A stretch of DNA of 63,466 bases, the filler included, from Perkinsus chesapeaki ATCC PRA-425 (taxonomy: Eukaryota; Protista; Perkinsozoa): assembly GCA_013115145.1 (NCBI GenBank). It is 7 parts of 7 records of this genome, joined end to end, with 100 filler letters (N's around TTAATTAATTAA, not from the genome) between each part and the next. Parts side by side here need not be neighbours in the genome. Positions count along the whole stretch, not along the records: positions 18,436 to 35,061 come from JAAPAO010000703.1; 6 more parts are not named here. One strand, written 5' to 3'. The translations under genes and the position numbers were made by a program. The notes under the pieces are model-generated. The model was given only the letters and a program-made list of their open reading frames with translations, had not been told where the DNA came from and made no database searches. This document shows, in pieces, positions 18,436 to 35,061 of the stretch. Positions within the stretch are counted from its first letter, which is position 1; each line of letters starts with the position of its first letter.

Positions 18436-19069
18436 AGTCCATGCATCTCACGGTTTCGCCGAGGCGAGCGAATATATAGAATCTTTACAGTGCGAGATAT
18501 CAAGGACATCTGCGCAAACTGGGAGGATGAACGAGTATTTCGGAAGTGACATGTTGAAGGGAGGCACAACAGGTTTACTTGCACGACAATCGATAACCTC
18601 GAATCATACCATCCGTTAATCACATACGAACGTGACACGGCCATTTTGTATCAATGTCGTCGAGCACGTGCCCGCTAACCTTTTTGCAGAGCCGTAGCAT
18701 CTACCATGTACGTTACTGATCGCCCATAAAGGAACGCTAAGATGCTTTGTCATTACGGACGGTAGCGGCAAAGTGTTTCTGTCGATGTTTCGATGTCATG
18801 CATTCGGGAGGCACTGTGCCGAATGCGCGTTCAGACCGTGGCTGATTCACGGCTTTCGGTATTGATACCGAGATGCTCATTCGTTTGGTACATCGTCCGG
18901 TGAGGGAGCTGGTTTCTTCTAGGATACAATGACTACTTCATCATCAACAACACAATAGTCCATCTTGTATATAGCAAACGTACACTGTACTGAGATCAAC
19001 TATCCTCTTCACGGCAGACAAACCTTCTCTTGATTATGGTAATGAAATAACAAACATCAGTAGTAGTCG

Positions 19070-20189
19070 CTAGTTGTGAATGACCGCCAGAGCATTCGAT
19101 CTGAAATAAAATCGAAATAGATCAATCCAACAAAGAACGGCGAAGAAGTACAAGGGTTTCCAAAAAAGGTAATAAAGGGGATGGTTTCCTACAGCGTAGG
19201 GAGGAGGGTGGCCGTTATAAGAACTCCAAGGAAGGCACCAAATACTGTATCGCCAATCCAATGGAAACCAAAATAGACGCGAGCAAACATTACGCAGGGA
19301 ACCTGAAAATATAAAGATAGTTGTTCAAGAACCCGTGCGAGGGGGCCGATGCCGCCGACTATGATGGAAGTGAAAGGGGTTTATTACTACCAGAGCATAG
19401 GCCTTAGGCGTGTTATCACAGAATGCCAGAAAAGTAGCTAACGCGCCGGCTTGAACTGAATCCCCACTTGGAAAGGAAAAGTTACTCTCCATCCATCTTA
19501 AATTGACTTCTCTTGGAGCGGATGGATACGTCGGACGGACACGTTTGAAAACCTGAAACAATAGTCTGAGACGATCACAACTGTACGGTGATGAGGTCTC
19601 GAACGAAGGAGCTAAAAGCAGACCCTGCTGAGAACCCACTGAGGAATGGCGAGCAAGGCGAAAGGCTAAATGCTGGCTTTTTAGTCTGCCCAGTCGACTC
19701 CAGCACAGAGCCTGTTTTTGATGCACGACTGTATGTCGAGCGTGAAAAGAATCATGTTAGATAATCAAAAGATTCCAATGCTCACTCATACGGCAATGGT
19801 GATTCCGAGCCAATATGCTACCCGGCTACTACCTTTTTCAATGTGAGCGAAACTGCCACACAGAGAACAACGCATGTGGTGTACTCCAGTCCTCTTTGGG
19901 TGCCCATCTTGACGGTAATGATAACCGCCAAAAACGGCACAACGTAAGTAGAGCAAATTAAAGCCGGAATCGCCACAATGTAGTCAAGAACCCCGAGCTT
20001 CAAGGAATGGATGTAAGTTGCAGATATATACTGGTCAAATTTCGCAAGAGCGTTCGACGAGCTCTCGGCAGCAGCGGTAGGGGGTGCCTCCACCTCCATC
20101 GACCCCAAATCCTTCTTAGGGCTTTCAATTAGCGACTTATCCGGCGAATTACGTAAAGTCACCGTCTGGAGTGTATCAGATCGAGCCAT
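19070..20189 (-). CDS. PAP2-superfamily integral membrane phosphatase, at least 3 exons
   Basis: After splicing: C1 motif KKVFKRVRP, C2 motif SFPSGDS, C3 motif ARVYFGFHWIGDTVFGAFLG, with hydrophobic helices between them. Confidence 0.85.
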
Positions 20190-20861
20190 GCAAGATATTC
20201 AAGAACAGATAAGCTGAAGGAAAGTTAATTGTACCGGTGACAGCCAACAAACACGAACGGGTGTCTCTGAAACGACAAAAAAACACACAGGTCCCCTTCA
20301 CTAGGGCTTTATCTTAATCACAGTAACGCATGATGGGCATATGACAAGTGCAGCTCGACCACACGACTTGGGGCCATTCTAAGACGCTCTTTTCTCGATG
20401 AGTAGTTCAGGAACGGAGACTCACGACTAGCAAGTTGTCCACATGTTCGACATTCCGATGAGTTCCGCACTCCTTGCAGTTTATGATCACTTGTGTTTCA
20501 GGATCCTCCGCCTGCTGCTGTGATAAATCCACTTGTGACCGGTAATGAATCCGTGACACCTGATTGCAAAGTGAATAAAGATCTTTCATACACTACTACA
20601 GAAGCACCCTACCAAATAATGGGGATAGGAAAGATTTTATAAAATCGTCGATAGGAAAATGCTTGGGGAGTTTGTATACATTATTATAATAAATTCAGTA
20701 TTGCATGACTATAAAAACGATAACTAATACACGCCGGCAGACGACGTACAAATGCTCATGTTTAGCGCAATATTTCTGATCTTCGCATACTTTGTAATCA
20801 GCTTCGCTTTCGCCATGTAAACGAGTACAACGATGCTACGCGCTGCTTCGCTGCGAATAAT

Positions 20862-22319
20862 TTAAAGCTGCGTATTTTCGAACGTTGATCGACCCCTTTG
20901 TTCATAGGCATGCCGGAGGTATATTCCCAAATATATTTTCGTATCCACAATACCCCACATCACAGCCTCGGCCTTCTCGCCTACTACCATTCTCTCATTT
21001 ATAGTAGCTCCGGCAAATGTGCTAAACAGCGGCGTCTCTGCTGCCAGTTTCTCCTTCTCCTCATCAGACATTCGAGCCCCTTCATGCGTATGGTGGACGA
21101 AAGGCGACCTTGCTTCAGCAGCCTACGTCGAACCACCCCTAGATCGCAATAAGTTATGAAGCTCACCACCTGCTGTGGCTCCACCGATGTGACCTCCTTT
21201 ATGTAAAACTTCAACGTTCGTTCGATCGAGTCTTTTAAGGTCTTTGCTGACTGCGGGCATCTGATCGGGAGCCTCTTTGTCTCGAAAGTATGCCATAGGG
21301 ATGAAGCAGAGCAATCACAAGTCAGTATATAAGCAACTGTAGCCAGGAAGAACGATTCAGCGTGCTGACTCGTCGGGTTCAGGCAAAGATTATGACATTC
21401 AATTCCATTTAAAAATCTCTAAAAATATGACTTGAACGATGTGAACCACTAGGCAGGATACTTCTCAGGCAGATAAGACCAGGAGAATAATACTACCCTT
21501 CACAGGAACCATGTAGCGCCAGGGTCACCTTTCCCGTCTCGCTGTCAAACGCTACGAACTCGCAGTCCCCACCTGAAAACGGCCTGTAGCCATGCATATT
21601 AACCAACCGAGCACTTCTAAACACTGGAAGGCGAATTCTGCATCGATCATAGCAGCTGCAATATCGTACCATCTTGTGCAATAACCGGTCTAATTCTGTC
21701 ATCTAACAACGCCTGAATTCGCTTCTCCACTTCACTCTGCTCCGGAAGATCCTTCGCCTGGTCCAATTCAGATGTGCCCAAGAAGTCCTCCTGTGAAGGG
21801 AAGCCGTATCCCACTCGCTCACAAAAAATCTCACCTGAAGCCCCTCGGCGTTTTCTAATATACGTTGGAAAGCCTCTAGCTGACCCTTGCTGAATGCCTC
21901 GCTCTCGCTAACCATTCTAGGTGCCACAACTGACAGATGCGCTTCAATAAGGCATCCGAAATAAGGTCATACTTGATAAGAATCCTTCGCCAATCATAAC
22001 CTTCTCGACACCATCAACAGCGAGCAATTCCTTGGCAGCCCGCGGGCAGAACTCACTTGTCGCTGTGTATCTAACACCGAAACTACACACGGGCCACTAT
22101 AGTGTATAGTACACAACACACTGGAAAGTGTCCAGAAAGGACTGGACACTCGCCAGGACTGCGTACCTACGTTGTGGATCGCCTTCCTCCACTCCCAGAA
22201 CCACCGCCCTTGAAAGCCTCCGACGTGTACATAACCGCTAATGGATTCGGAGTGCTCTCCATCACCACTCTAGAGCGGATAGGTTTCGAACAGAAATACC
22301 GAAACGCAGTAGGCCGCAT
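20862..22319 (-). CDS. NFU1: Mitochondrial NFU1-type Fe-S cluster carrier (NFU N-domain + NifU-C domain); 3' end uncertain, may extend to ~20407
   Basis: Arg-rich presequence MRPTAFRYFCSKPIRSR. N-domain ESTPNP...AKELLAVDGVEKVMIGEGFLS. C-domain IQALLDDRIRPVIAQDGGDCEFVAFD..GKVTLALHGSCEGCPQSAKTLKDSIERTLKFYIKEV, with the CxxC split by an intron. Confidence 0.9.
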
Positions 22320-22842
22320 GCACAAAACTGAAAACCAAAAAAAGAAACTATCGCGATACCTTGCACGCATGCGCACGCTTGTGCGTGCGAGACCCACTAA
22401 CAGCAGCTGCGGGCAAAAGCCGGGAAATATTACAAGCTACATAAGGTCACAAATTGAGCGGTCTGGCAACTTTAAGAAGATGCCGGGATAATATCGCTAT
22501 TAAGCATGTCTCAACAACGCTTTAAGAGGAACAAGGTGTTATAACAAAACCCCAACAAGGGTATCTACATAACCCATTGAACAACTTATAACACACAGCG
22601 CCTGACCGAGACGTTTCTCAGTAACATGCGACTTATATGCGATGGGAGACAAATGACACAATGTCACACAATCTTGTCTCCGGTACTTGTAGCAAACGCA
22701 CAATTATCATGACTCGAAGATATATACTTATCGCGCTAAGTGTCACTTGTGAGATTCAGTGAAAAGCGGCTGACGATTCTAAGGAAAAGAAATACCGAAA
22801 TACATAGGTTAAAAGAGAAAAAGGAAGAGATAGATCAAACAA

Positions 22843-23962
22843 TTAATTTGATGCTCTCAACGAACGCTTCCCACATGGCGCAAGATCAGAGTGGTCCGAA
22901 AGATGACAGATAGATCGCCCACATGCGTCCAAGCCAGCAGTGCCTTTACAATAGCTCCCAAAGTATTCTGAACAGAACTTTCCAGGGTTGGAAAGCCCGA
23001 GGCAGCCGTGCTCTTGGTACATCTCGTACTCAGACTTCCCGCTAGAGCCTTCTGAAGCAGCATTACCAGGAACAGTCTCAACCGAGGGAGTAGTCTCAAC
23101 AACCGGATCCGTCTCAGCCACCGTGGTGACCTCAAAGGTAGTAGGAGAACTATCACCACCGAAGGTAGGCTCAGTGGTGGGCTCCGACTGAGGGCTGCCG
23201 CCATCGGCACCATTGACTAGAACATCCGCGCAGGCACCGAAATAGAAAGGGCCGAATTTCCACATCCAATTGATTGTGTACTTGCCCGTGGCATAGTCTT
23301 CTGGGATGGTTACATAGCCCGAAGTATCCTAAAGCACTCCGCAGTCACGGAGAACTCGGCAAGGACCACTTACAAAGTCACGATGATAGGGCAAACAGCC
23401 ATCCAAGACCTTGAAATCGGTCCAATCTGGGTCGGACTTGTATGGGGTGATTCTGATCTCGATGCAAGTGCCTTAGGAAGAGAAAATCTATTACAAACCA
23501 CTAGCAAGCCACTAACCTTCAGACTCCCCATTCTCGGCATGTCCATTATTACGCCAGAGAATACGAAGCTTCTTTCCTGAGAAAATCAAACCATAGCGCA
23601 CACCCAAACTACGCGATTTTACCAGCGTTAACAATGGCCAAATCATTGATGTTAGGAGCTCCCGGGGAACCAGTCGCTCGGCAAGGGCGCATACTGCTTT
23701 CAGTCAACTCAATTTCGTGCTTGGGATCAAGAGCACATTCTTCCAGACTCGCTAGAGGGCACACATATCTCTGACAAAACACAAAGTGATAACAAACTGT
23801 GAAACCGAGAGCTCCTACTGTATAATAATCATCATCCAGACCGATATATCCCATACGGGCAAGTCCTTCATCAACATCGCCTTCAAGATACCACATCCAG
23901 CTGTGGGCGTCGGCGCCGAAGAAAACAGCGAAAGAGGGAATGACGTAACGAGAGAACGGCAT
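22843..23962 (-). CDS. Secreted histidine-brace (LPMO-like) protein A with Thr/Pro/Ser linker and Cys-rich tail; 5 exons
   Basis: Signal peptide ends ADA|H. Spliced mature protein HSWMWYLEGD...LRILWRNNGH(91)...YVTIPEDYATGKYTINWMWKFGPFYFGACADVLV, then a PTTEPT linker, then C..L.NPG.FC..YFGSYCK..C...IC. Confidence 0.8.
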
Positions 23963-24545
23963 TATTTTGAGGCTATATGCAAAACTAAGACACTTCTAGC
24001 TTGCACATAATACAGAGAATAAATGATAGTCGGGAAGTAAGCCGAAACCGTTAGATATTTCATCGTATCTTGCGACAGTTTCAGATTCCCAAGATACCCT
24101 TGTCTACGTTTCTCTCGTATTCTACATATTATCTAACGCTTTCAAGAAAATCAAGATTCCTCGCTCCTCCGAAATCGAGTAGGCAACAGGCGTTAGACTT
24201 CGCGCTCGACACGATGAGGAAATATAGAAGGTATCGCTCGAGGATTCGACTTGTTCTCATTTCAGGTAAGCTTTCTCCTTATGGAACGCAATACTTTCGG
24301 TAGAAATCGAATCTAGTCGATCCGTGGGTCACATGTTTAGGCACAAATATGCGCAATAAAGCTTCACCATATTCACAAACGACTTGAATTAGCTACTAAT
24401 TAGGACAAAGAAATTGAACTACCGAGCCACTTATGGACAAGCAAAAATTAATGATTGAATTCGTTTAAATAGCGATATGATTAACGTGATATACGGAACA
24501 ATACTTTATGAGAGTTAAGACTCCGTAAACGACAGATGGAACCCT

Positions 24546-25564
24546 TCACTCGCGGCGTCGTAATCGTTGACATGGTCCCAGCTCAGTGTGATCCGACTCA
24601 TGGCAGATATGGCGTCCACAGTAGTCAGCACCAGCAGATAGCTTACAATACGTACCATAGTATTCGTAGCAAAACTCACCAGGGTTATCTAGACCACCAC
24701 AGCCTTTCTGCTTATAAAGGTCCATTACATTTTGTGCGCCATTCCGCGCCAGTGGTTTGGACGAACTGCTTGTCTTAGGCACATAGGTGACCTTCTTGGG
24801 GGCCTCGGTATAAGTTTTTGCTTCCATTTTCACAGAGCCACCAGCATTTTCGTTGGTGATGGCAATGTCGGCACATGTACCAAAGTAGAAGGGACCGAAT
24901 TTCCACATCCAGTGGATGACATACTTTCCCGAGTACTGCTCAGGGATGCGAACAACAGCGGAAGTCTCGTGGTTGACGTGATATGGCAGACATAACTCTA
25001 GGATCTTGAAGTCGCTCCAGTCGGGGTCGGCCGAATAAGGTGCTATTCGGATTTGAACGCACGTTCCTAAAGCCTGTCAGATAACGCAGAGAGGCAACGC
25101 TGCTCACCATCAGACTCGCCGTGGGTGTGACCGTTGTTCTTCCAGAAAATCCTCAAGGCTTTACCTAACAAACTGCCTTGGCCCCCAACAGGTGTAGACC
25201 AACCTACCAGCGGTAACAGCTGCAATGTCCTCAACATTCGGGGCACCAGGGGAGCCACTTGCTCGACATGGCCGGAGGCTGCTCTGATCCAGCACTATCT
25301 CATGCTTAGGCTCAAGAAAGCAATCATCTAGACTCCTCAATGGACAAATATATCGCTGAAAACACAGGCATTTTGCGAGCACGGTGGTAGCGCTGTATAG
25401 TATACCGTAAAGTAGTCGTCATCAGGACCAGAGAGGCCCATTCTAGGATAGCCATCTTCGATGTCACCCTCCAAGTAAAACATCCAACTGTGGCCTCTAG
25501 CTACATAGACAAGTGCACTGACCACAACGGTGAGTCTGTAGGGAATGGACAAAAGGGACACCAT
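24546..25564 (-). CDS. Secreted histidine-brace (LPMO-like) protein B, tandem paralog; 4 exons
   Basis: Signal peptide ends ARG|H. HSWMFYLEGD...LRIFWKNNGH...VVRIPEQYSGKYVIHWMWKFGPFYFGTCADIAI, then a linker, then a YYGTYCK Cys-rich tail. Three intron positions are shared with A. Confidence 0.8.
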
Positions 25565-26361
25565 TTTAACGAGAGCTAACAAGTAATACGGAAGGCATGG
25601 CAAGTAGATCGGTACGCTCTTTATCCATGAGTATCCAGCAGTTTCATCAGATAGGCAAACCGTTACGTTATTGCCTACCTGTCAACTCGCGCGCGCCCGG
25701 CTTGTGAATGCTTCATGCTTATTGGCAGCTGTTCAAGGTGCTCATCTGTTGTATGCGTTCCTTCGGTATTGCTAACAGTGACGTGATGGTATCCAGAAGA
25801 ACAAAATTCGAGTACTATCGAAACACCAGGCTCGACTGAGACAGAAAATCAAGTGTCGCCATTCACTCAAAATCCATAAAGTATGACCCGCAAATTGCGA
25901 AGGTTAGGGAGTATCTTCCCCGCCGTTTCATCAACACAAAGATATCTTCGTCACCAGTGGAGCGCGCCACGCGCACTACGAAGATTCCTATACTTTTGCA
26001 GCAAGTTGCCTACTACAGCAGTAATACGTATTTTCACACGCTCCTCCTTCGATATAACTAAGCAGCATTATCGAATATACAGACACTCTCTCCAAGCAGA
26101 CCACTCGATAGACTGCAAAGGCTGTATACAGTAATCACAGCAACATCCACTGAACTGAAGGCTTTAATGCAACTGTAGAACAAGTGGATGAATCATACTC
26201 TAGTAAAACAGTTTAATAGACGAGCTTCTCAAAACACTTATTACACTAAACGACATTCTGTGAAGTAACGACGATATCAAACCAGTTGAATCCACGACGA
26301 GCGCTCTCACAAGCCAATCCACGAAGGTTTCTTAACGCAAAGACAAGGATACACAGAAACG

Positions 26362-29300
26362 TCACGTGCTCGCCATGCGCTTAACTTTCACAGCTTTCCC
26401 CTTCGCCCCCTTCAAGTGCTTCACAGCCTCCGCTTGTCTAGGGCCCATTCTCTTCCACTTCAAGGTTTCCTCTTTGCTAAGTTTCTTCTTTGGATCCGGC
26501 ATTAACGTACTTCTAATCAACATTCTTATCGGCGTCCCTTCCATGCCGAATTCTTCCCTCATCAAGTTGCGCATTTGCTGCATGTAATTAGGGGGAAAGC
26601 CACCATGCGTATTCGCCCAAAAAACAAATGTCGGTGGCCGGGATCGAACCTGCGTCACATACTTGGGGTAGAACTTCACACCATCTTTCCACGGCGGAGG
26701 ATAATGCTCCTGAAACTTCCTCATCCATTCGTTTATCTCAGACGTTGCCACACGACCGTTCCAGCGCCGAAACAGCGCTTGAATTCTCGTCATCATCATC
26801 ATAACGTTGAAACCCGTCTTGGCGGATATAAATATAATTGGCATGCCTTTCACTTGCGCCGATTTATTCACCGTATTGGTAACATACAGCTGCCGTAACT
26901 TCTCTCTGAAAAAGAATGGCTGGATACTACACGGTATCCACCGACGACTCAGCTTACTTGTGGCGGTCCTCAATAAGGTCCCACTTGTTAATGGCGACTA
27001 CCACACACTTCCCCATTTCCACCGCCATTCGAAGCAACCTTAACTCCGCTCTATTTGGGATATGAGACCGTTCCGCTCGAGATCCATCAACAACAATTAC
27101 AACCACGTGTGCACTGAAAGAGCAACCACTCCAGCGGGCATGTGAAATGTAAAGGAACTTACAATCGTATCGCTCGCTGTGTCTCTGAGCCTGGGCCCAT
27201 CAATTCCTTGTCGCCCTTGTACCTGTAAACAATATCCCATTTAAAGGAATATAGCATGTGATGAGATACGCAGCCCGCAGACCTCGCTCCATCTGCATCA
27301 ATGCAAGCGCTATAGGACGGCTCCAGATATTATCCGAGCCCACATACATATCCTGTTCAAAGGTCTTAAAGCGCCAAATGCGCCAAGATACACGGAACAA
27401 AAATCACACAAATGACATCGAAATGGCAAAAGTCATTCACAACTTCTACAATAACATCGTATCACTTTTCTGCGAAACCAAGCAATACAAAGACGTATGT
27501 TTTCGCCACTTGACCTGTAGTGGAGGGCTCTATATGAAAATGGTATGCAAATCCCCGAGACGACCCATCGAACATCTCAGCAGACTAGATGCCGAGAAGC
27601 ATTCCAAACTTACGCCCAACCCTTGAAAACACCGGCTGTGTCGAACAGCCGAACCTTATGCTGTCTAAATGCCCAATCAGTAACAATCGTATCAGTCGTC
27701 GTACCTGAGCATCTTAACAGCGGAGCGCAGCTCCTAATCTCCCCGTACCAGGAGTTGAATCCGTTATTATTCTATCCTCCTTCAGTAGGGCATTTACCAG
27801 CGAACTTTTCCCCGCATTTGGCAGACCTACGATCGCCATGTTGATTGCTCGTTCATCTCTAAGAAGCCTTCGGCGCTCTTCCAAAACAACATCTCTAGTC
27901 TGAAAATACTTCTCTTTGCAACCTCATCTTCTTGACCAAACAGCTCGACATGCACTCTAATTTCGAAAAGTCAATATCCTAATATACGGGGATTCCAGCA
28001 AATGCGAACCTTACACCACGCTCGACTTGCACGAAGAAGAGTTATCCCGCAAACTCAAGGCTGCACCCCCTCCTCGCCGCTTGGCTAACGAAATAGTTCA
28101 GCTTACCATTTTATCCTTCAAATGATAAGGCTTCTTGGTTAGATATTTCGCCAGCGCTTTTCTTTCTATCATAGTTCTCCCATCAATCCCAATCTCATTG
28201 GCGATGTCATCATCCATGCCTGGGCCTCGTTCCATTTCATCTTCCTCAAAATCTTCTTCCTCTTCACCTTCGGACTCTTCGACTGGTAACCCTCTGAAAA
28301 GCATCGAAATGGACACCTTCAGCATGATCAAACAGTCGCTAAATCAATCTCAATCCACGTGGCCATGGATCACTCCCACTAGTGACCGCTACCATCAAGC
28401 CGGCCAGTGCTACGTAATGCCGCCAATCTAACATTTACAGGCGCGAGCCAAAATCTAGACGCGGACTCAAGGCACTACAGCTACGTGGGAACACAGTTAC
28501 CCAGCACTACAGTCCAATCGCTAATTGATCACTGAAGATGGCGGAGTCTACAATTCCCGATCAGATTGGGGGGCTTTTAAGCAGCAAAACCGAGTTCAAG
28601 CCGCCGAGCTGTCCACCTTTTCCGATCTCGCCTCTTCTGCTTCTCCTTCTCTCTTGCCTCCCTTTTCTCTTCTTTAATCGCTTCCTTATACTCTTGATAC
28701 TCGATAGCTTCCTTTAACCATATCTCATGCATCTCTTCTATCGTTTCCAAACTGGGACCATCTCCCGCCATTTCCTGAAACGCTAATCAACAGCCCATCC
28801 ACAGTAAGCATATCCAAACACTTATGGCCACTAAGACCTTTGACGAGCTCCGAAAGCAACGGCTGTGAGTCATCTTCACTGGCGTCCCCAGTTTGGGGAC
28901 GCCAAAACTGAGTCGGCATATTTGACAACTGAAAGTTGTCAAATATGAATTTAAAACAAAATTTCTGGGAACTAGTAGCACATTTCCTTTCAAACTCCCT
29001 ATTATATCTCCTTAGAGGCTCATAAACTTTATAAGGAGACTAAGCTGCTACTCCCCGCCCCGAATCTCCCCGAAGCACTCACTGCTTGGATAGCATCATC
29101 ATCACCATCCTCCTCCCCTCCCTCTCCCTCAACCTTCCCTTCATCCATGTCAGCCCACGCCCCTCGAAGCCTATCCCCGACATCGAGCATTAACCTATCG
29201 TATCTACCAACTACTAGCTCACACGGATACCTTAGTTCATCATCAACAATCAGTCGAAATAGAATTGTGGCTCGTCACAGAAAACGAGGCGAAATTCACG

Positions 29301-31554
29301 GAAGTTCCGTGACGGAACTCCCCCAGATTTTCCTCCGTCTCTAATAGATGAACTGGAGTCCGAGGAACATATCCTTGAGGTGCTCGTTAATGAGCACACC
29401 TTAGTTGTTCTTAAACCCTTGGAAAACACGAGTTGATAGGAATTTGACGCGCGGTGTAGATATTTAAAGCATCTACACCGCGTGTAAAGTATCAAATTTT
29501 TTAAATGTACTCAAACGTAATTTAGTAATGATTCAGTTTCATATTCCTGAGGTGTTAATTGGCAGCAGCTGCTGGCTTCAGCGCTGCTAATAATCCTCTC
29601 TCTGCACTTGAAACTTTTCCACCCTTACAAATCATCCATGCCCTCATTCTTAGTTGCCGATATCATCACCGGATCTCCAAGCCCCAAATCATAGCAATCT
29701 GCGATGGCATCCGTCGGGAAATCTTGCGCCCCATCCGACTTATTCGCCGCTAACACGATCGATATCGGCGGCCGACTCCGCCTGAAACAAGTAAACTTAA
29801 ACAGCAGACATTTTTTATCCCTCTTCAGCAGCTCACTGCACGTGGCTTGAATGATCCTCCAGACCTTGTCGCGGAAAACCATTGAGGATTCTTAAAGATG
29901 TTTCCGAGTAATTAGCAGGTGAGTCTTGAGTATTAGGGTAGGACGGCTATTTCAACGGAGAAGGAATCACAAGAAAATTCCTCCTGGTTGTTGAGAAAAT
30001 TTCCCGCCAAGTCCTAGCATTTCCAGATGACGTTTAATGTACATAAGTCAGCAATCGCTGCCCTTACTCGTTCCTCTCCTCCTTCTCCTTGAATAGCTCA
30101 TTCAGCCGTTCAACCCTCTTGCTGACCATCCTCGCCAATTTCAAATCCAGTGGCGTCACTCCCTCTTTTGCATCCACCATAAAAATTACTGCATCGCTCC
30201 GCCCGATAGCTTCCAATGCTTTCTGGCGCATCTTTTGAAGCAGCTCACCTAAACCATCCATTTGCACATTCCATCAAATTGCCTAAGTCAATATCGATAA
30301 AACACTTAACACCTTAAATGCCCAGCTGCTCATCTCGTGATTCCAAGACCATCCATACTAGCTCGATTAGGGAACCGTACAACAGAGTAAGTGTAATGAT
30401 GCTATCCGAAGTTTCGTCGTCACTAGTAAAGTCCGGCACAGCCGGTGAATCCTATTTACCAAACCAGATCTCACTGTTTTCTGTCAGAACATCGTCCTCG
30501 AGTCCAGGAGTATCGTGTAGCATCATCTTCAACCTCCCCAACTGGCACATAGCCGATTTACCATCCCGTGTCGTCCCAGCAGCTGTATACCTGAATCGAT
30601 CACTCGATCGATAATGCACCCCTTAACCCAAAAAATTTTCATGCTGGTAATTCGCAAAAGCCTCATGTGAAGACGAAAAACTCAATTGCTTCCGTAAGCA
30701 TCCCTTTGTCTTATTAGTCTTCTCAGTGTCGCATCCTCCCCCCCCCCAATCCATTGATTCGTTCATGGCAAAGGCAGCAGCCTGTAGTTAATCATATAGG
30801 TCCATTCGCCAAAGCTCTCAAGACACAAGCTATCGTGTAGTAATTGCATAAGGGCCAAACCCTTCAGCGTTCCCCCACACTCACACTATCGCCTTCTGTC
30901 GACCGTTCTCAGCGTTGCGGTTGTTACCTGACAACAGATTTGGAAATAAATACTGTACAAAGTTGAATACTGCGCAAGTCTACAATATGCAATTAAAATA
31001 GTTACTTATGTGTTATAAGAGCAAGTAAACAGCGCGACACGTTATAACGGATAACACACAGTGAAGAATTTTCTCAGCAAATCTTCAACACTTTCATAGT
31101 TCTTTCAAGTATCTTTTCTTCTGTTTTTTCAACATTGTCAACAGTTCTTCAAATACCGAGGACACACCATCGCTGCCTTGATTGCCACTAGCGCGAGATT
31201 CGCAATAACACATTTTATTAAAGCAATGAGCTAGTGCAACTATAAAGCCTGAATGACACTGGTCTCGTCACGAAAATAAATTGAGTTCGAGAAGCAGCTC
31301 GAAATAACAGGAAAAAAGTGATAAACACTACACGATAAAAGACTATAATAAAAGATACAGTAAATATAGGAAATAATAATTCTTGCCAGGACGGATAACT
31401 TACTTTGTAACCGATTGAATAAACTTGATTTCCCTACATTTGGTCGTCCTACCATACATACTGTAACATGAGGCCTCTCGCTCATTAAACTTTGAGCAGC
31501 ATTTGCCGACACCGAAGAGATGCCCCGAAATAATAAAATATTAAACCTGATCAA
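26362..31554 (-). CDS. der: EngA/Der double-GTPase (ribosome biogenesis), probably organellar, multi-exon
   Basis: GD1: [56 protein letters not shown]2: [13 protein letters not shown] (~27800-27840), ISAKTG. C-terminal KH-like RPPTFVFW...IRMLIR. Confidence 0.9.
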
Positions 31555-33899
31555 TCAAGGCTGCATTGTTGCGTCGAACAACGAGCATCTCGAAAGTATT
31601 GCACCCGTAAGCGTTCTTCCTCCAGGAGTGCAATTTATCGACACTCATTTTTAGAACAGTGAAAATGTCACCGAGACACATCTCTACCTCAACACCACTC
31701 ACTGCATTCAAGAATGGTGGTGCAAAGCTGCTTAGACTCGACTGCTTCGCAGCCTAGGTAGTATCTAGGGCTGCTAAATGGTTTATGATGTTTGCTTTGC
31801 ACTTTTATGTCCCGTAATACGCACTGAAGCGTCACGGGTTACTTTAAGTTACACACACATCATTCACACATTCAATGACTAACATTACCTACTACAAACC
31901 AAGTTGTGGGTTGAACAAACCCAGCGCTTGCCGAACTCTAATAGCATCACCGACACTGATGCTGCGCCATGACTTCAACGCCAAGACATCACTAATGTGC
32001 TTCCTATGGGGCCTTTTCCAGGCCATATACGTGTTACAAACGCCGTGGTGTCCGATGAGAAGAGAGACAGGACTTTATCTTCAAACGAGGGGGAAAGCGT
32101 CCATTCGCTTACCTTGCTTTTGAATTACTTCCAATTAAATGCAAACATCTCCAGCATGGCTGACTTGCCATCCCCCACAAACGAAGGAAAGTGAAACTAC
32201 TCAAACAAGCTTCATCAAACGTTCACAAACTTCATAGCACCACTGTATCCTGAAGCATCATCCGGGATGATTCATCCCGGAATAAGTACAAAAACCAGAC
32301 AAGTTCCAATTAGTGGATTCCAAGGGTCAAATTTTGTCTACATATAAACTGTATAACGTCAATTATGATCACGTAAAGCTTTTCAGCGTCCGTCTATCAC
32401 GAACCATCTATCAAGTCCGCGGAAGTGTCTGCAATCCCAATAAGGCATCAAGCAGTTATTAACAACCCCGCTTGGCCACCACTCTTCTTCGGAAAGCTCA
32501 AAACAGTTCTCCGGTCGGAAACGTCATTTTTCATGCGCGCCACGAAACTGTCCTAATAATCTATAGGCTCATCAATATCAGAATCACCATCCAATCTCTC
32601 ATCATCATAAACATCTTCATCCTGCCAATGGATATCGATCATCTGGGCGTGCGCGTAGAACGAAGAGTTCTTGCTCACCTGCGAACACCAGCAACGCATG
32701 TGCACAGGAAATGCTTCCATGCTTCCCCTCGGCCGAGCCATGTATTGTCGAGAAAATTATATCGCGAGGCTTTGTATAATTTCTCACCCCCGACGAGCAC
32801 GTTCATGCGTATCCCGACCACTACTACTAATAAGTTAATAGTATTAACATTATATCTCTCTGGACTTATAATATTCCTAGTGACAATACAGCGTGTCTCT
32901 TTCTATTTTAAACTAGTACACACACACTACCACATTTCTAAGAAAACAGGCGACCCTTTGATGAAGAACAGTCTAGGAAGCCTTTAACGGAAACCCAGTC
33001 GAGAGTTCACGGCGTCATGCAAGATGATGAAAATGCCGCTAGAGTCTACGCGGAACTGATTAAAATAGTTCTAAACGGGTTACAAAATAGTTGGCTTCCC
33101 GAGAAAATGCTCAACATGATACTACCTAAAACTATCGAAAACGAAGCCATCGCCAGATACAGCAAAAAGCAGCATAAAGTTAATTGGTCAACACTAGGAA
33201 ATGATTAGTAACACTAAGATCAAGATCTTAAGCGATAAACGATTTCCCGCTCCTGTGATACCCTCATCTGTGAGCACAGAGCGAGATATTTCACACAAGA
33301 TCATGACCAACTCGGTGATGGAAGTTATTCGAATCCGGTTGATGACGGCTTCTTACTCTCCAGCGCTTCTTCAATCTATGCAATCTGTTAATACAACATT
33401 TAGCCAGCTTAATGCTTGGGAACTTCAGAACAAACCCACACGTTCCATCAGATTGCGGCACCTACGTCATACCGTATTCTCCGCAACGTCGAGAAAAAGC
33501 CACTATGACCCTATGAATATCTATGGGATAAAAACGCAAACTGTGGAGTAGTCCTTCGAGCTGCTCGCTGTCAACATCTTCATGCCACCCAGCGGAAAAT
33601 ACGTTGAATCTACAAGGTGAGGAATACTTGCCGAGTTGAGCCCGAACGCTATTAGTAGGGAAAAGCTAACGACTGTACAAATCTATTTATCGATTATTCT
33701 ATTTCCTTCTCGTACGATCGACTCCAGCCATACTTTTGTTAATAGTAAAGAAACAATGTCGTAGAATCTGGTATAGACACCCTCGTGCGATAAAGACATT
33801 TCCGATGACAAGCTACTCTGAACATAGCTTCTGTTCGAAGAGCAAATGCCTCAAACAACATAAGGGAACTCTCCTCGGTATCTTATCAGCAGTCTAAGG

Positions 33900-34740
33900 C
33901 ATCTTCGAGTTAGTGTGTCATACTCACTCTAAAGGGCGTTAGGAAACGTCGTGAGAACTACTCCCTTGCTCCATTTTTTGCGATCATACCCGATATCAAC
34001 ACTCAAAGCTCCCCCACGCGGCTCCTAGCTTTCTGGCGCTTCGACACCCGGCCCACTTAGCGTGTAAACTCAGACATTATTTCCCCCCCATCCCTACTCG
34101 ATAATAAAAAAACCGTCCTCCTGTTAAGAAACCCGAAATACCCTTTAGCGACATTGAACTAACACGGTTGTTGCCTACCTGCTCTCCGGTCCACTTTTCC
34201 TGGTCAGTGCTATATCCATATCATCCCCTGTACTCGGCACAAATATGGCTTGTCGAGACGCCCACACGAATGCACACCCAAATGCCTCTCCGTACGCCCG
34301 CCGTTTCGGCACAGCGATTTCTTGTATCTGAAAAAGTTGAAAAACGTTCGACTTCTTCGCCAAATTTCCGCTTGCCTTCTCCATCACTTTCAAGCTGTCT
34401 TTCACAGATTTACACAGAACGTACACTGTGTCGCTCTGGTGGCCTTTACGCTGGAACCGAAATACAATGTCCCGATGATCCACATCGACCTCCGCATGCT
34501 CCTTAAGAATCTCTTTAACCTAATAACGCGATGTTGAGCATTCATTGCTCCTTGGTCCAAGGGCATCAGTGGAAGTCTATGAAGCACTTCTTCGTCAGTA
34601 GTTTTATTAACGAATATCACACCCATCGCTGGACTCATGAGTGGTAACCTTGCCCAACAACGCTACCACTCTTCGACATTTTAGGGCAAACCTTGCCACC
34701 ATCATGATCCATGAAATTCTTGCTACATTCCTCGTCATTT
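33900..34740 (-). CDS. Hypothetical protein, multi-exon, possible RRM-like segment; extent uncertain
   Basis: Open exon VKEILKEHAEVDVDHRDIVFRFQRKGHQSDTVYVLCKSVKDSLKVMEK...SGPE flanked by AG/GT, with further open blocks at ~33950-34060. Confidence 0.35.
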
Positions 34741-34939
34741 TCTCTTATCATACAATACATACGTAAAATGTTCATTACGATTCAGAGCTGAGCGGCAGGC
34801 TCGATCTACAGGTGATCGGGCACAGAGGATTCGATGGAAATGAAATCAGCTCGAAGTTCACAATTACTTATCGATATCTCCGCCCTTCCATGCCGTGCAG
34901 TTTTTCAAGACAAGTTGTGTGTGGACTCGCTAGGGAATT

Positions 34940-35061
34940 AATTTTGTCTGTAATACAGCACAGACCGTTTCGTGCTTGACCTCGTACTTCTACACCATTT
35001 CAAGATCTAATCAGTAAAAGCCAAGATCAAATTAATATAGCCCAGAACAGATTAGTAAAAG
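34940..35061 (+). mobile_element. Relic of the same retroelement family as 50556-52039 (RT segment running into the 20-bp repeat at the contig end)
   Basis: tacaccatttcaagatctaatcagtaaaagccaagatcaaattaatatagcccagaac matches the reverse complement of ~50580-50680. It reads TPFQDLISKSQDQI versus TPFQHLISKSQDQI. Confidence 0.7.

Follow-up and report, generated by a model that had tools for sequence, protein, structure and literature searches.

Views on the breakdown of recalcitrant polysaccharides were changed by the lytic polysaccharide monooxygenases (LPMOs), every new family of which has added further substrates or further biology. The present analysis concerns two tandem genes of the alveolate Perkinsus chesapeaki, a parasite of clams, referred to as gene A and gene B, whose products are predicted to be secreted LPMO-like proteins; they lie between positions 22843 and 25564 of a stretch of DNA of 63,466 nucleotides, filler included, taken from assembly GCA_013115145.1 (the whole stretch is hereafter called the window). 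Several described systems can be compared with the family to which these proteins belong, referred to as the Perkinsus family. AA11 is fungal and chitin-active, is represented by AoAA11 (4MAH/4MAI) and AfAA11B (9EXJ/9HDG), and is the only family with solved structures that was detected by sequence. AA15, represented by TdAA15A of Thermobia domestica (5MSZ), gave the best structural match, and its taxa overlap with those of the Perkinsus family, Bacillariophyceae and Alveolata being among the holders of AA15 (PMC5823890). In that same paper the LPMO similarity of the sequences was confirmed through a Pfam search, and its supplements contain no mention of Perkinsus, Alveolata, Skeletonema, or Thalassiosira (PMC5823890). 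The X325/Bim1 proteins (LaX325, 6IBH) have an LPMO-like fold and a histidine brace, a site that is predicted in the Perkinsus family as well. Lastly, DUF7492 gathers mostly ascomycete proteins of unassigned function; no paper mentioning it was found in the literature searched, nor was any found that ties Perkinsus, Skeletonema, or DUF7492 to the family described here.

On the basis of their sequences and of structural modeling, it is likely that genes A and B encode secreted copper enzymes of the LPMO superfamily, endowed with a histidine brace and with a cysteine-rich module acting as a tether. The two genes are paralogous and arranged head to tail on the minus strand, B preceding A, and both precursors consist of a signal peptide, an LPMO-like domain of ~172 aa, a Ser/Thr/Pro-rich linker, and a six-cysteine module of ~50 aa. 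In gene B (FOL47_009774; 24546-25564, minus strand; four exons, 294-aa precursor), the signal peptide (25493-25564) comprises 24 residues, with a hydrophobic core and small residues at positions -3 and -1, and ends with A-R-G followed by His. The codon of this His1 (25490-25492) marks the predicted mature N-terminus; in the histidine brace, the first ligand would be supplied by this residue and the second by His91 in the motif N-N-G-H (25127-25129), and Phe159 (mature numbering), embedded in F-Y-F-G-T-C-A-D (24882-24884), is placed at the predicted axial position. The LPMO-like domain spans mature residues 1-172 (24843-25492, with three introns inside), and the C-terminal six-Cys module spans precursor residues 236-288 (24567-24725). 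Gene A (22843-23962, minus strand; five exons, 311-aa precursor in our model, with its own stop codon at 22845-22843) follows the same scheme: a signal peptide of 19 residues (23906-23962) ending with A-D-A, the His1 codon (23903-23905), His91 of N-N-G-H at mature position 91 (23539-23541), and a Phe in F-Y-F-G-A-C-A-D (precursor residue 180; 23239-23241) that is predicted to be axial by homology with family column 159. Its LPMO-like domain (23200-23905) contains four introns, and its C-terminal six-Cys module (22870-23028) is conserved with that of gene B and of the Perkinsus olseni protein P0005 up to the last residues.

How the proteins would bind copper, on what substrate and by what catalysis they would act, and what the Cys module would do are inferred as follows. 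The signal peptidase would cut right before the His, which would thus become residue 1; one copper would be held in a histidine brace made up of the amino group and the imidazole of this residue and of the imidazole of His91 in N-G-H, with Phe159 (Phe or Tyr in the relatives) at the axial position. The reduced copper might then react with O2 or H2O2 and bring about the oxidative breakage of glycosidic bonds in an insoluble glycan, to which the enzyme would be tethered by the Cys module. The likely substrate would be chitin, β-glucan, or a cellulose-type wall polymer, belonging either to the parasite or to its bivalve host.

The conservation of the putative copper site across the family is the first line of evidence. 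An exhaustive HMMER search, in which a profile of the mature domain was compared with 1.84 billion cluster representatives, retrieved 52 related clusters at E ≤ 1e-3, 45 of which at E ≤ 1e-10. Conservation was counted on a domain alignment of 39 sequences, 32 of them with an N-terminus. His1 is kept in 31/32 of the latter and His91 in 37/39 of the aligned members, while column 159, three residues before Cys162, is occupied by Phe (21) or Tyr (18) and by nothing else; six cysteines are invariant or nearly so, and Trp86, Pro139, and Trp152 are invariant. The cleavage site was assessed by a rule-based check of the -3/-1 residues and of the hydrophobic core: in all the 31 usable N-termini, that of gene A among them, the residue before His is Gly, Ala, or Ser and that at -3 is Ala, Val, Thr, Ser, Cys, or Ile, and a hydrophobic core is found upstream in 30 of them. 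Nearly all the members keep the two histidines and the Phe/Tyr, and if there were no metal site, the conservation of these residues across alveolates and diatoms would be difficult to account for. An earlier note on this DNA, which had spliced both genes by hand, had already described most of these features in what it named an alveolate, as Perkinsus chesapeaki is. The codons that it gave for the two His1 and for the second His at mature position 91 are exact, and the motifs that it listed (HSWM.YLEGD, LRI.W.NNGH, and V.IP...GKY.I.WMW...F..CAD[VI]) have all been found. Its two cleavage sites, after A-D-A and A-R-G, conform to a pattern that holds in 31/31 family members, and the conservation of His1 and His91 that it had supposed among homologs is borne out by the counts reported above.

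The comparison with P. olseni points in the same direction. The tandem order and the neighbors (GTPase ... B, A, NifU, PAP2) are the same in this species, and the existence of an orthologous tandem pair implies that the duplication is older than the split of the two species. Gene B shares 75-77% identity with its P. olseni orthologue, and the gene A model is collinear with the orthologue P0005 (76% identity). Synonymous sites between the two species are saturated (pS ~0.8), against nonsynonymous differences of 0.048 (A) and 0.077 (B) for the N-terminal domain, 0.15 (A) and 0.10 (B) for the C-terminal module, and 0.40 for the linker of A. Such a pattern is typical of a free linker that joins two folded domains under selection, and the LPMO-like domain is under strong purifying selection. 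This evidence bears on the idea that the proteins bind glycans, mediate adhesion, or build the wall on an LPMO scaffold whose histidines have no redox role. Several LPMO-fold proteins serve as adhesins or colonization factors, and in two members of the family the scaffold persists without the brace: P0058 has lost both histidines, and P0049 has lost His91. Nevertheless, His1, His91, and the Phe/Tyr are kept in nearly all the members, genes A and B included, from alveolates to diatoms, and the domain is strongly constrained, so that this explanation appears very unlikely. As for the two divergent sequences themselves, P0058 carries Tyr instead of His1 and has no N-G-H, and it maintains the fold motifs and two Cys modules, whereas P0049 reads N-G-Y instead of N-G-H and no Cys module was detected in it; judging from their sequences, both are possible non-catalytic derivatives.

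The second line of evidence is the predicted fold. The AlphaFold model (m986d565dd61f), which was built with a 42-row family alignment, reached a mean predicted local distance difference test (pLDDT) score of 84.3, with values mostly above 90 in the domain and of 85-93 in the C-terminal module, the linker being disordered; when AlphaFold was run from the single sequence only, the pLDDT was 38.7. In the Foldseek search against the PDB, all the 50 matches listed are LPMOs (AA9, AA10, and AA11; E 1e-7 to 1e-4), and LPMOs likewise emerge from the fold searches of the AlphaFold DB clusters and of Swiss-Prot. With VIA-align, Z scores of 12.7, 11.6, 11.1, and 11.1 were obtained for TdAA15A, CvAA9A, AoAA11, and the AA10s, respectively, and the alignments all start at residue 1 of the model against His1 of the solved chain. 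A scan independent of Foldseek was carried out on 48,161 PDB representatives, in which ranks 1-23 (Z 12.7-9.1) are all occupied by LPMO or LPMO-like chains, comprising AA15, AA10, AA11, AA9, AA13, fusolin, AA14, X325, and AA16. Unrelated sandwich folds come next, at Z 7.7 or lower, and the reading of the domain as a generic β-sandwich was discarded on account of this difference. The ESM Atlas language-model features gave 0.89-0.91 to clusters named "Chitin-binding type-4", and the shape search of the same resource also led to LPMO clusters. The modeled domain is, therefore, an LPMO-type β-sandwich, as the earlier note had expected. Since Z scores are similar for many families (10.4-11.6 for AA9, AA10, AA11, and AA13; ~9 for AA14, AA16, and X325), the model places the domain at a roughly equal distance from all the known LPMO families.

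This position between families is also apparent from the sequence searches. Pfam LPMO_10 (PF03067), which covers both AA10 and AA15, matched 0/40 family members at E ≤ 1, and BIM1-like_dom (PF20238) matched none of the 40. AA9 (PF03443) was found in 6/40, all below its cut-off of 27.8 bits (best E 0.0039; 14.3 and 17.3 bits in the two cases with an individually listed score). DUF7492 (PF24320) gave the most frequent signal, in 31/40 members at E ≤ 1 (best 9.1e-6), with listed scores of 14-22 bits (maximum 22.3) against a cut-off of 27; its alignment is limited to the C-terminal hairpin G-x-Y-T-x-x-W-x-W...F-x-x-S-C-A-D, i.e., to positions ~185-256 of a profile of 265. The translations of single exons yielded just a weak DUF7492 hint, and one of the fold matches from AlphaFold DB, with an alignment that begins at query residue 1, is a DUF7492 protein. 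No NCBIfam match was obtained. As far as its sequences tell, the family matches none of the Pfam LPMO-type models compared (LPMO_10, AA9, and BIM1-like).

When the PDB sequences were searched, a profile of three Perkinsus sequences found nothing, whereas the 39-sequence profile retrieved AoAA11 (E 6.6e-4) and AfAA11B (E 1.3e-3), with marginal E values and an alignment spanning profile positions 51-163 only; a third AA11 (7P3U) followed at E 0.82, AA9 chains gave E 0.4-2, and neither an AA10 nor an AA15 was matched, 5MSZ not even at E ≤ 10. In the AoAA11 alignment, Tyr140 falls on the Phe/Tyr column and His60 lies one column away from the N-G-H histidine, two residues that we take to belong to the copper site of AoAA11 and whose numbers were confirmed by a residue count along the alignment. 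The likeness to AA11 resides in the hairpin G-K-Y-T-L-x-W-x-W and in the segment [FY]-x-x-C-A, which align with the Perkinsus family, in the fold (Z 10.9-11.1), and in the ESM Atlas features, which gave 0.89-0.90 to fungal clusters carrying LPMO_10. However, the N-terminal third of the Perkinsus family is left unaligned and begins with H-S-W, which is not an AA11-type start; a Phe replaces the AA11 Glu, the identity in the structural alignment is 17-22%, the appended modules differ, and the organisms are fungi on one side and marine protists on the other. With AA10 and AA9 the family shares the fold, the N-terminal His aligned at residue 1, and the axial Phe, as in many AA10s, but these two groups are set apart by the Pfam results reported above. 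As for AA15, TdAA15A is aligned over 146 residues (model 1-170 on chain 1-195), at 17% identity and with no profile match to 5MSZ. Membership in AA15 was weighed on the basis of the top Z score and of the taxonomic overlap and was then dropped, LPMO_10 and 5MSZ being undetected by sequence.

The suggestion of the earlier note that the proteins might form a new family has thus gained ground: no strong match was found, LPMO_10 being absent from all 40 members, AA9 and DUF7492 staying below threshold, and the best PDB match being an AA11. None of the computational checks by which the note could have been refuted, as far as they were run, went against its interpretation. The LPMO-like nature of gene B is not concealed in public annotation, since UniProt already gives the product the automatic name "Chitin-binding type-4 domain-containing protein", although it leaves the protein unclassified. 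The same name is attached to P0001 (the gene B product), P0002, and P0005, and its basis was not reproduced with the copy of Pfam that was used.

The modules joined to the domain provide a further, functional context. The six-Cys module (~50 aa) has the pattern Y-x3-G-C ... F-C ... S-Y-C-K-x-W-x-x-D-x-C-G-R-S-x-C ... C, and 56 copies of it occur in 35/36 members scanned, with one to three copies per protein and six invariant cysteines. Neither a Pfam nor a PDB match was found for it, and the ESM Atlas features offer a weak lead, with values of 0.60 or lower to CBM_10, Chitin_bind_1, and CBM_1; from its sequence, it is possible that it represents a carbohydrate-binding module, one unassigned to any family model. 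In Skeletonema, the proteins P0017 and P0074 (713 aa) are composed of the LPMO-like domain, a Cys module, a GH16 domain, and two more Cys modules, and P0044, from a metagenome contig related to Skeletonema, of the LPMO-like domain, one Cys module, and GH16. Pfam recognizes the GH16 part at E 1.3e-13; among proteins of solved structure, this part is closest to 1,3-1,4-β-glucanases. Carbohydrate-active enzymes are usually accompanied by linkers, by small modules rich in disulfides, and by a glycoside hydrolase as partner. Two side observations concern these architectures: P0074 is named merely "glycosyl hydrolase family 16 protein" in GenBank (KAK1735218.1) and in UniRef, and the metagenomic protein P0024 (765 aa) carries two Cys modules and a C-terminal region of ~400 aa without a Pfam match.

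Some observations weigh against the reading of genes A and B as LPMO-type copper enzymes. First, P0001 has no Pfam match at E ≤ 10, and no Pfam or NCBIfam model reaches its threshold. Second, two small sequencing runs bearing the same species label contain no RNA from any part of the stretch. Third, the substrate is a guess, for which the hints diverge: chitin is suggested by the resemblance to AA11 and AA15, β-glucan by the GH16 fusion, and wall glycans of the parasite or of the host by the biology of the organism. Fourth, the Glu of AoAA11 located two residues before the axial Tyr corresponds, in the family, to an almost invariant Phe (F157), at the position where AA9 has the Gln of its Q-x-Y motif. 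Owing to this Phe, no canonical second-sphere Glu/Gln can be readily recognized, and a copper protein devoid of catalytic activity is conceivable.

It is thus possible to imagine that these are non-catalytic copper proteins with an LPMO fold, involved in the acquisition or handling of copper at the cell surface in the manner of X325/Bim1. Besides the Phe found where AoAA11 holds its second-sphere Glu, this is favored by the resemblance of the fold to LaX325 (Z 9.1) and to an AA16 LPMO-like protein (Z 9.1), and copper scavenging could be needed by a parasite living inside host hemocytes. On the other hand, the structural scores to the catalytic AA15, AA9, AA10, and AA11 exceed that of X325. The two C-termini are hydrophilic or charged (...RLRRRE and ...SLRASN) and bear no apparent glycosylphosphatidylinositol (GPI)-anchor signal; this, together with the absence of any BIM1-like_dom match in the members, disfavors the X325/Bim1 interpretation. 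The Ser/Thr/Pro linkers, the repeated small Cys modules, and the diatom GH16 fusions, which are reminiscent of carbohydrate-active enzymes and set the family apart from X325/Bim1, likewise argue for a polysaccharide-directed LPMO rather than for copper trafficking. On balance, a role limited to copper handling seems unlikely, and a polysaccharide-directed LPMO remains the preferred interpretation.

The distribution of the family was then considered. Word-index searches found relatives from Perkinsus only, and their family-profile version added few sequences and no other named source. Overall, the named sources are Perkinsus, the diatoms Skeletonema marinoi, S. dohrnii, and S. menzelii, and MMETSP transcriptomes, whose members must accordingly be transcribed; many marine metagenome and metatranscriptome contigs are further sources. 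One metagenomic member, P0107 (327 aa), is encoded by a single uninterrupted open reading frame (L003, 6001-6984) on a contig of 1.57 Mb, which also bears a gene for a chlorophyll a/b-binding protein, so that a member of the family is present in the nuclear genome of an alga. The 52 clusters retrieved are far fewer than would be expected inside AA9 or AA10, which indicates a small, separate family. By comparison with the Pfam and NCBIfam models and with the PDB sequences, and considering the modeled fold, this small LPMO-like family of marine protists is probably new. It would not be new in a categorical sense, since known LPMOs have the same fold, brace, and logic, and since the proteins already bear an LPMO-type label from an automatic pipeline.

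A broader proposal can be advanced tentatively, with a confidence that stays short of even. The family might be an unclassified LPMO family, a future AA family of CAZy, occurring exclusively in marine protists (perkinsids, diatoms, and further algae) and characterized by the H-S-W start, the N-G-H motif, three conserved disulfides, a Phe in place of the second-sphere Glu/Gln, and a new six-Cys binding module of its own. The GH16 fusions might reflect a substrate new to LPMOs, e.g., a wall glycan of protists or a β-1,3-glucan like chrysolaminarin or callose, and the role in Perkinsus might be the remodeling of the parasite wall or the attack on host glycans. If this were true, the family, being restricted to protists, would bring oxidative glycan cleavage into the marine microbial eukaryotes, namely a perkinsid parasitic on bivalves and bloom-forming diatoms, and the diatom GH16 fusions supply a concrete and testable hypothesis on the substrate. 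Perkinsus causes disease in bivalves, and the two proteins are candidates for the wall remodeling that accompanies the passage from trophozoite to zoosporangium or for the interaction with host tissues.

Concerning the gene structures, the part of the window that carries the two genes (18436-35061) is the whole contig JAAPAO010000703.1 of P. chesapeaki (16,626 bp). In the manual splice models, the exons of gene B are 25564-25406, 25355-25208, 25164-25108, and 25066-24546 (introns of 50, 43, and 41 nt), and those of gene A are 23962-23819, 23770-23623, 23576-23517, 23471-23374, and 23328-22843 (introns of 48, 46, 45, and 45 nt), all on the minus strand; the seven introns, 41-50 nt long, are all of the GT-AG type. 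A spacer of 583 bp (23963-24545) separates the gene B stop codon from the gene A start codon. The two precursors share ~50% identity overall (158 identities over 317 alignment columns), and their domains share 64%, as obtained through the A orthologue P0005. The spliced product of gene B is identical, letter for letter, to the deposited protein KAF4654799.1 (P0001), and gene A agrees with the deposited P0109, annotated as "NFU1 iron-sulfur cluster scaffold" (500 aa; window 20862-23962, minus strand), over residues 1-252, which means that all four splice junctions agree. The splicing proposed in the earlier note is therefore confirmed for both genes. It might still be supposed that the genes are artefacts of manual splicing or of gene prediction and that the proteins are not made, a view to which the lack of transcript support for either locus, in the two runs already mentioned, lends something. 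Against it, the model of gene B coincides with an independent deposited prediction, the junctions of gene A recur in P0109 and in the P. olseni orthologue, the protein is conserved while synonymous sites are saturated, and relatives occur in MMETSP transcriptomes and, as one uninterrupted reading frame, on the 1.57-Mb algal contig; an artefact is, in our opinion, exceedingly improbable.

A different matter is the annotation of gene A. After residue 252, P0109 skips the six-Cys module and the stop codon and continues in the NifU/Nfu gene that lies downstream. The A-type and NifU genes of P. olseni are separate (305 and 283 aa), and in the orthologue P0008 the first four exons are as long as those of gene A (144/148/60/98). 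Given the separate P. olseni genes and the conserved C-terminal module of A, these sequence comparisons indicate that the A-NFU1 fusion of P0109 is most probably an annotation artefact. This chimeric "NFU1" model conceals one of the two proteins from searches based on names.

The surroundings of the two genes and some of their relatives deserve a few further observations. Upstream of gene B (window 26362-34520, minus strand), a gene rich in introns encodes a Der/EngA-like GTPase of 850 aa, which contains two MMR_HSR1 domains and one KH-like domain; on the downstream side of gene A, past the NifU gene, there is a gene for a PAP2 phosphatase, and this order is kept in P. olseni. The deposited B-type orthologue of P. 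olseni, P0002 (L002, 8398-9405), is devoid of the conserved segment S-D-G-T-C-V-Q-I-R-I-A-P-Y-S. Its DNA still codes for G-T-C-V-Q-V-R-I-A-P-Y, in a frame that differs from that of the following A-D-P-D-W, and the segment is intact in the related contigs P0003 and P0004; the sequence suggests a one-base indel in that assembly, which the gene caller would have avoided by means of a shifted splice site. Finally, a second tandem pair is present in P. chesapeaki, on JAAPAO010000514.1 (L004), formed by FOL47_008220 (P0014; 5080-5808) and FOL47_008219 (P0065; 7601-8327), each encoding 194 aa. These two proteins have the H-S-W start and the N-G-H histidine, are without the linker and the C-terminal Cys module, and are the nearest relatives of genes A and B apart from the P. 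olseni orthologues (E 1e-45).

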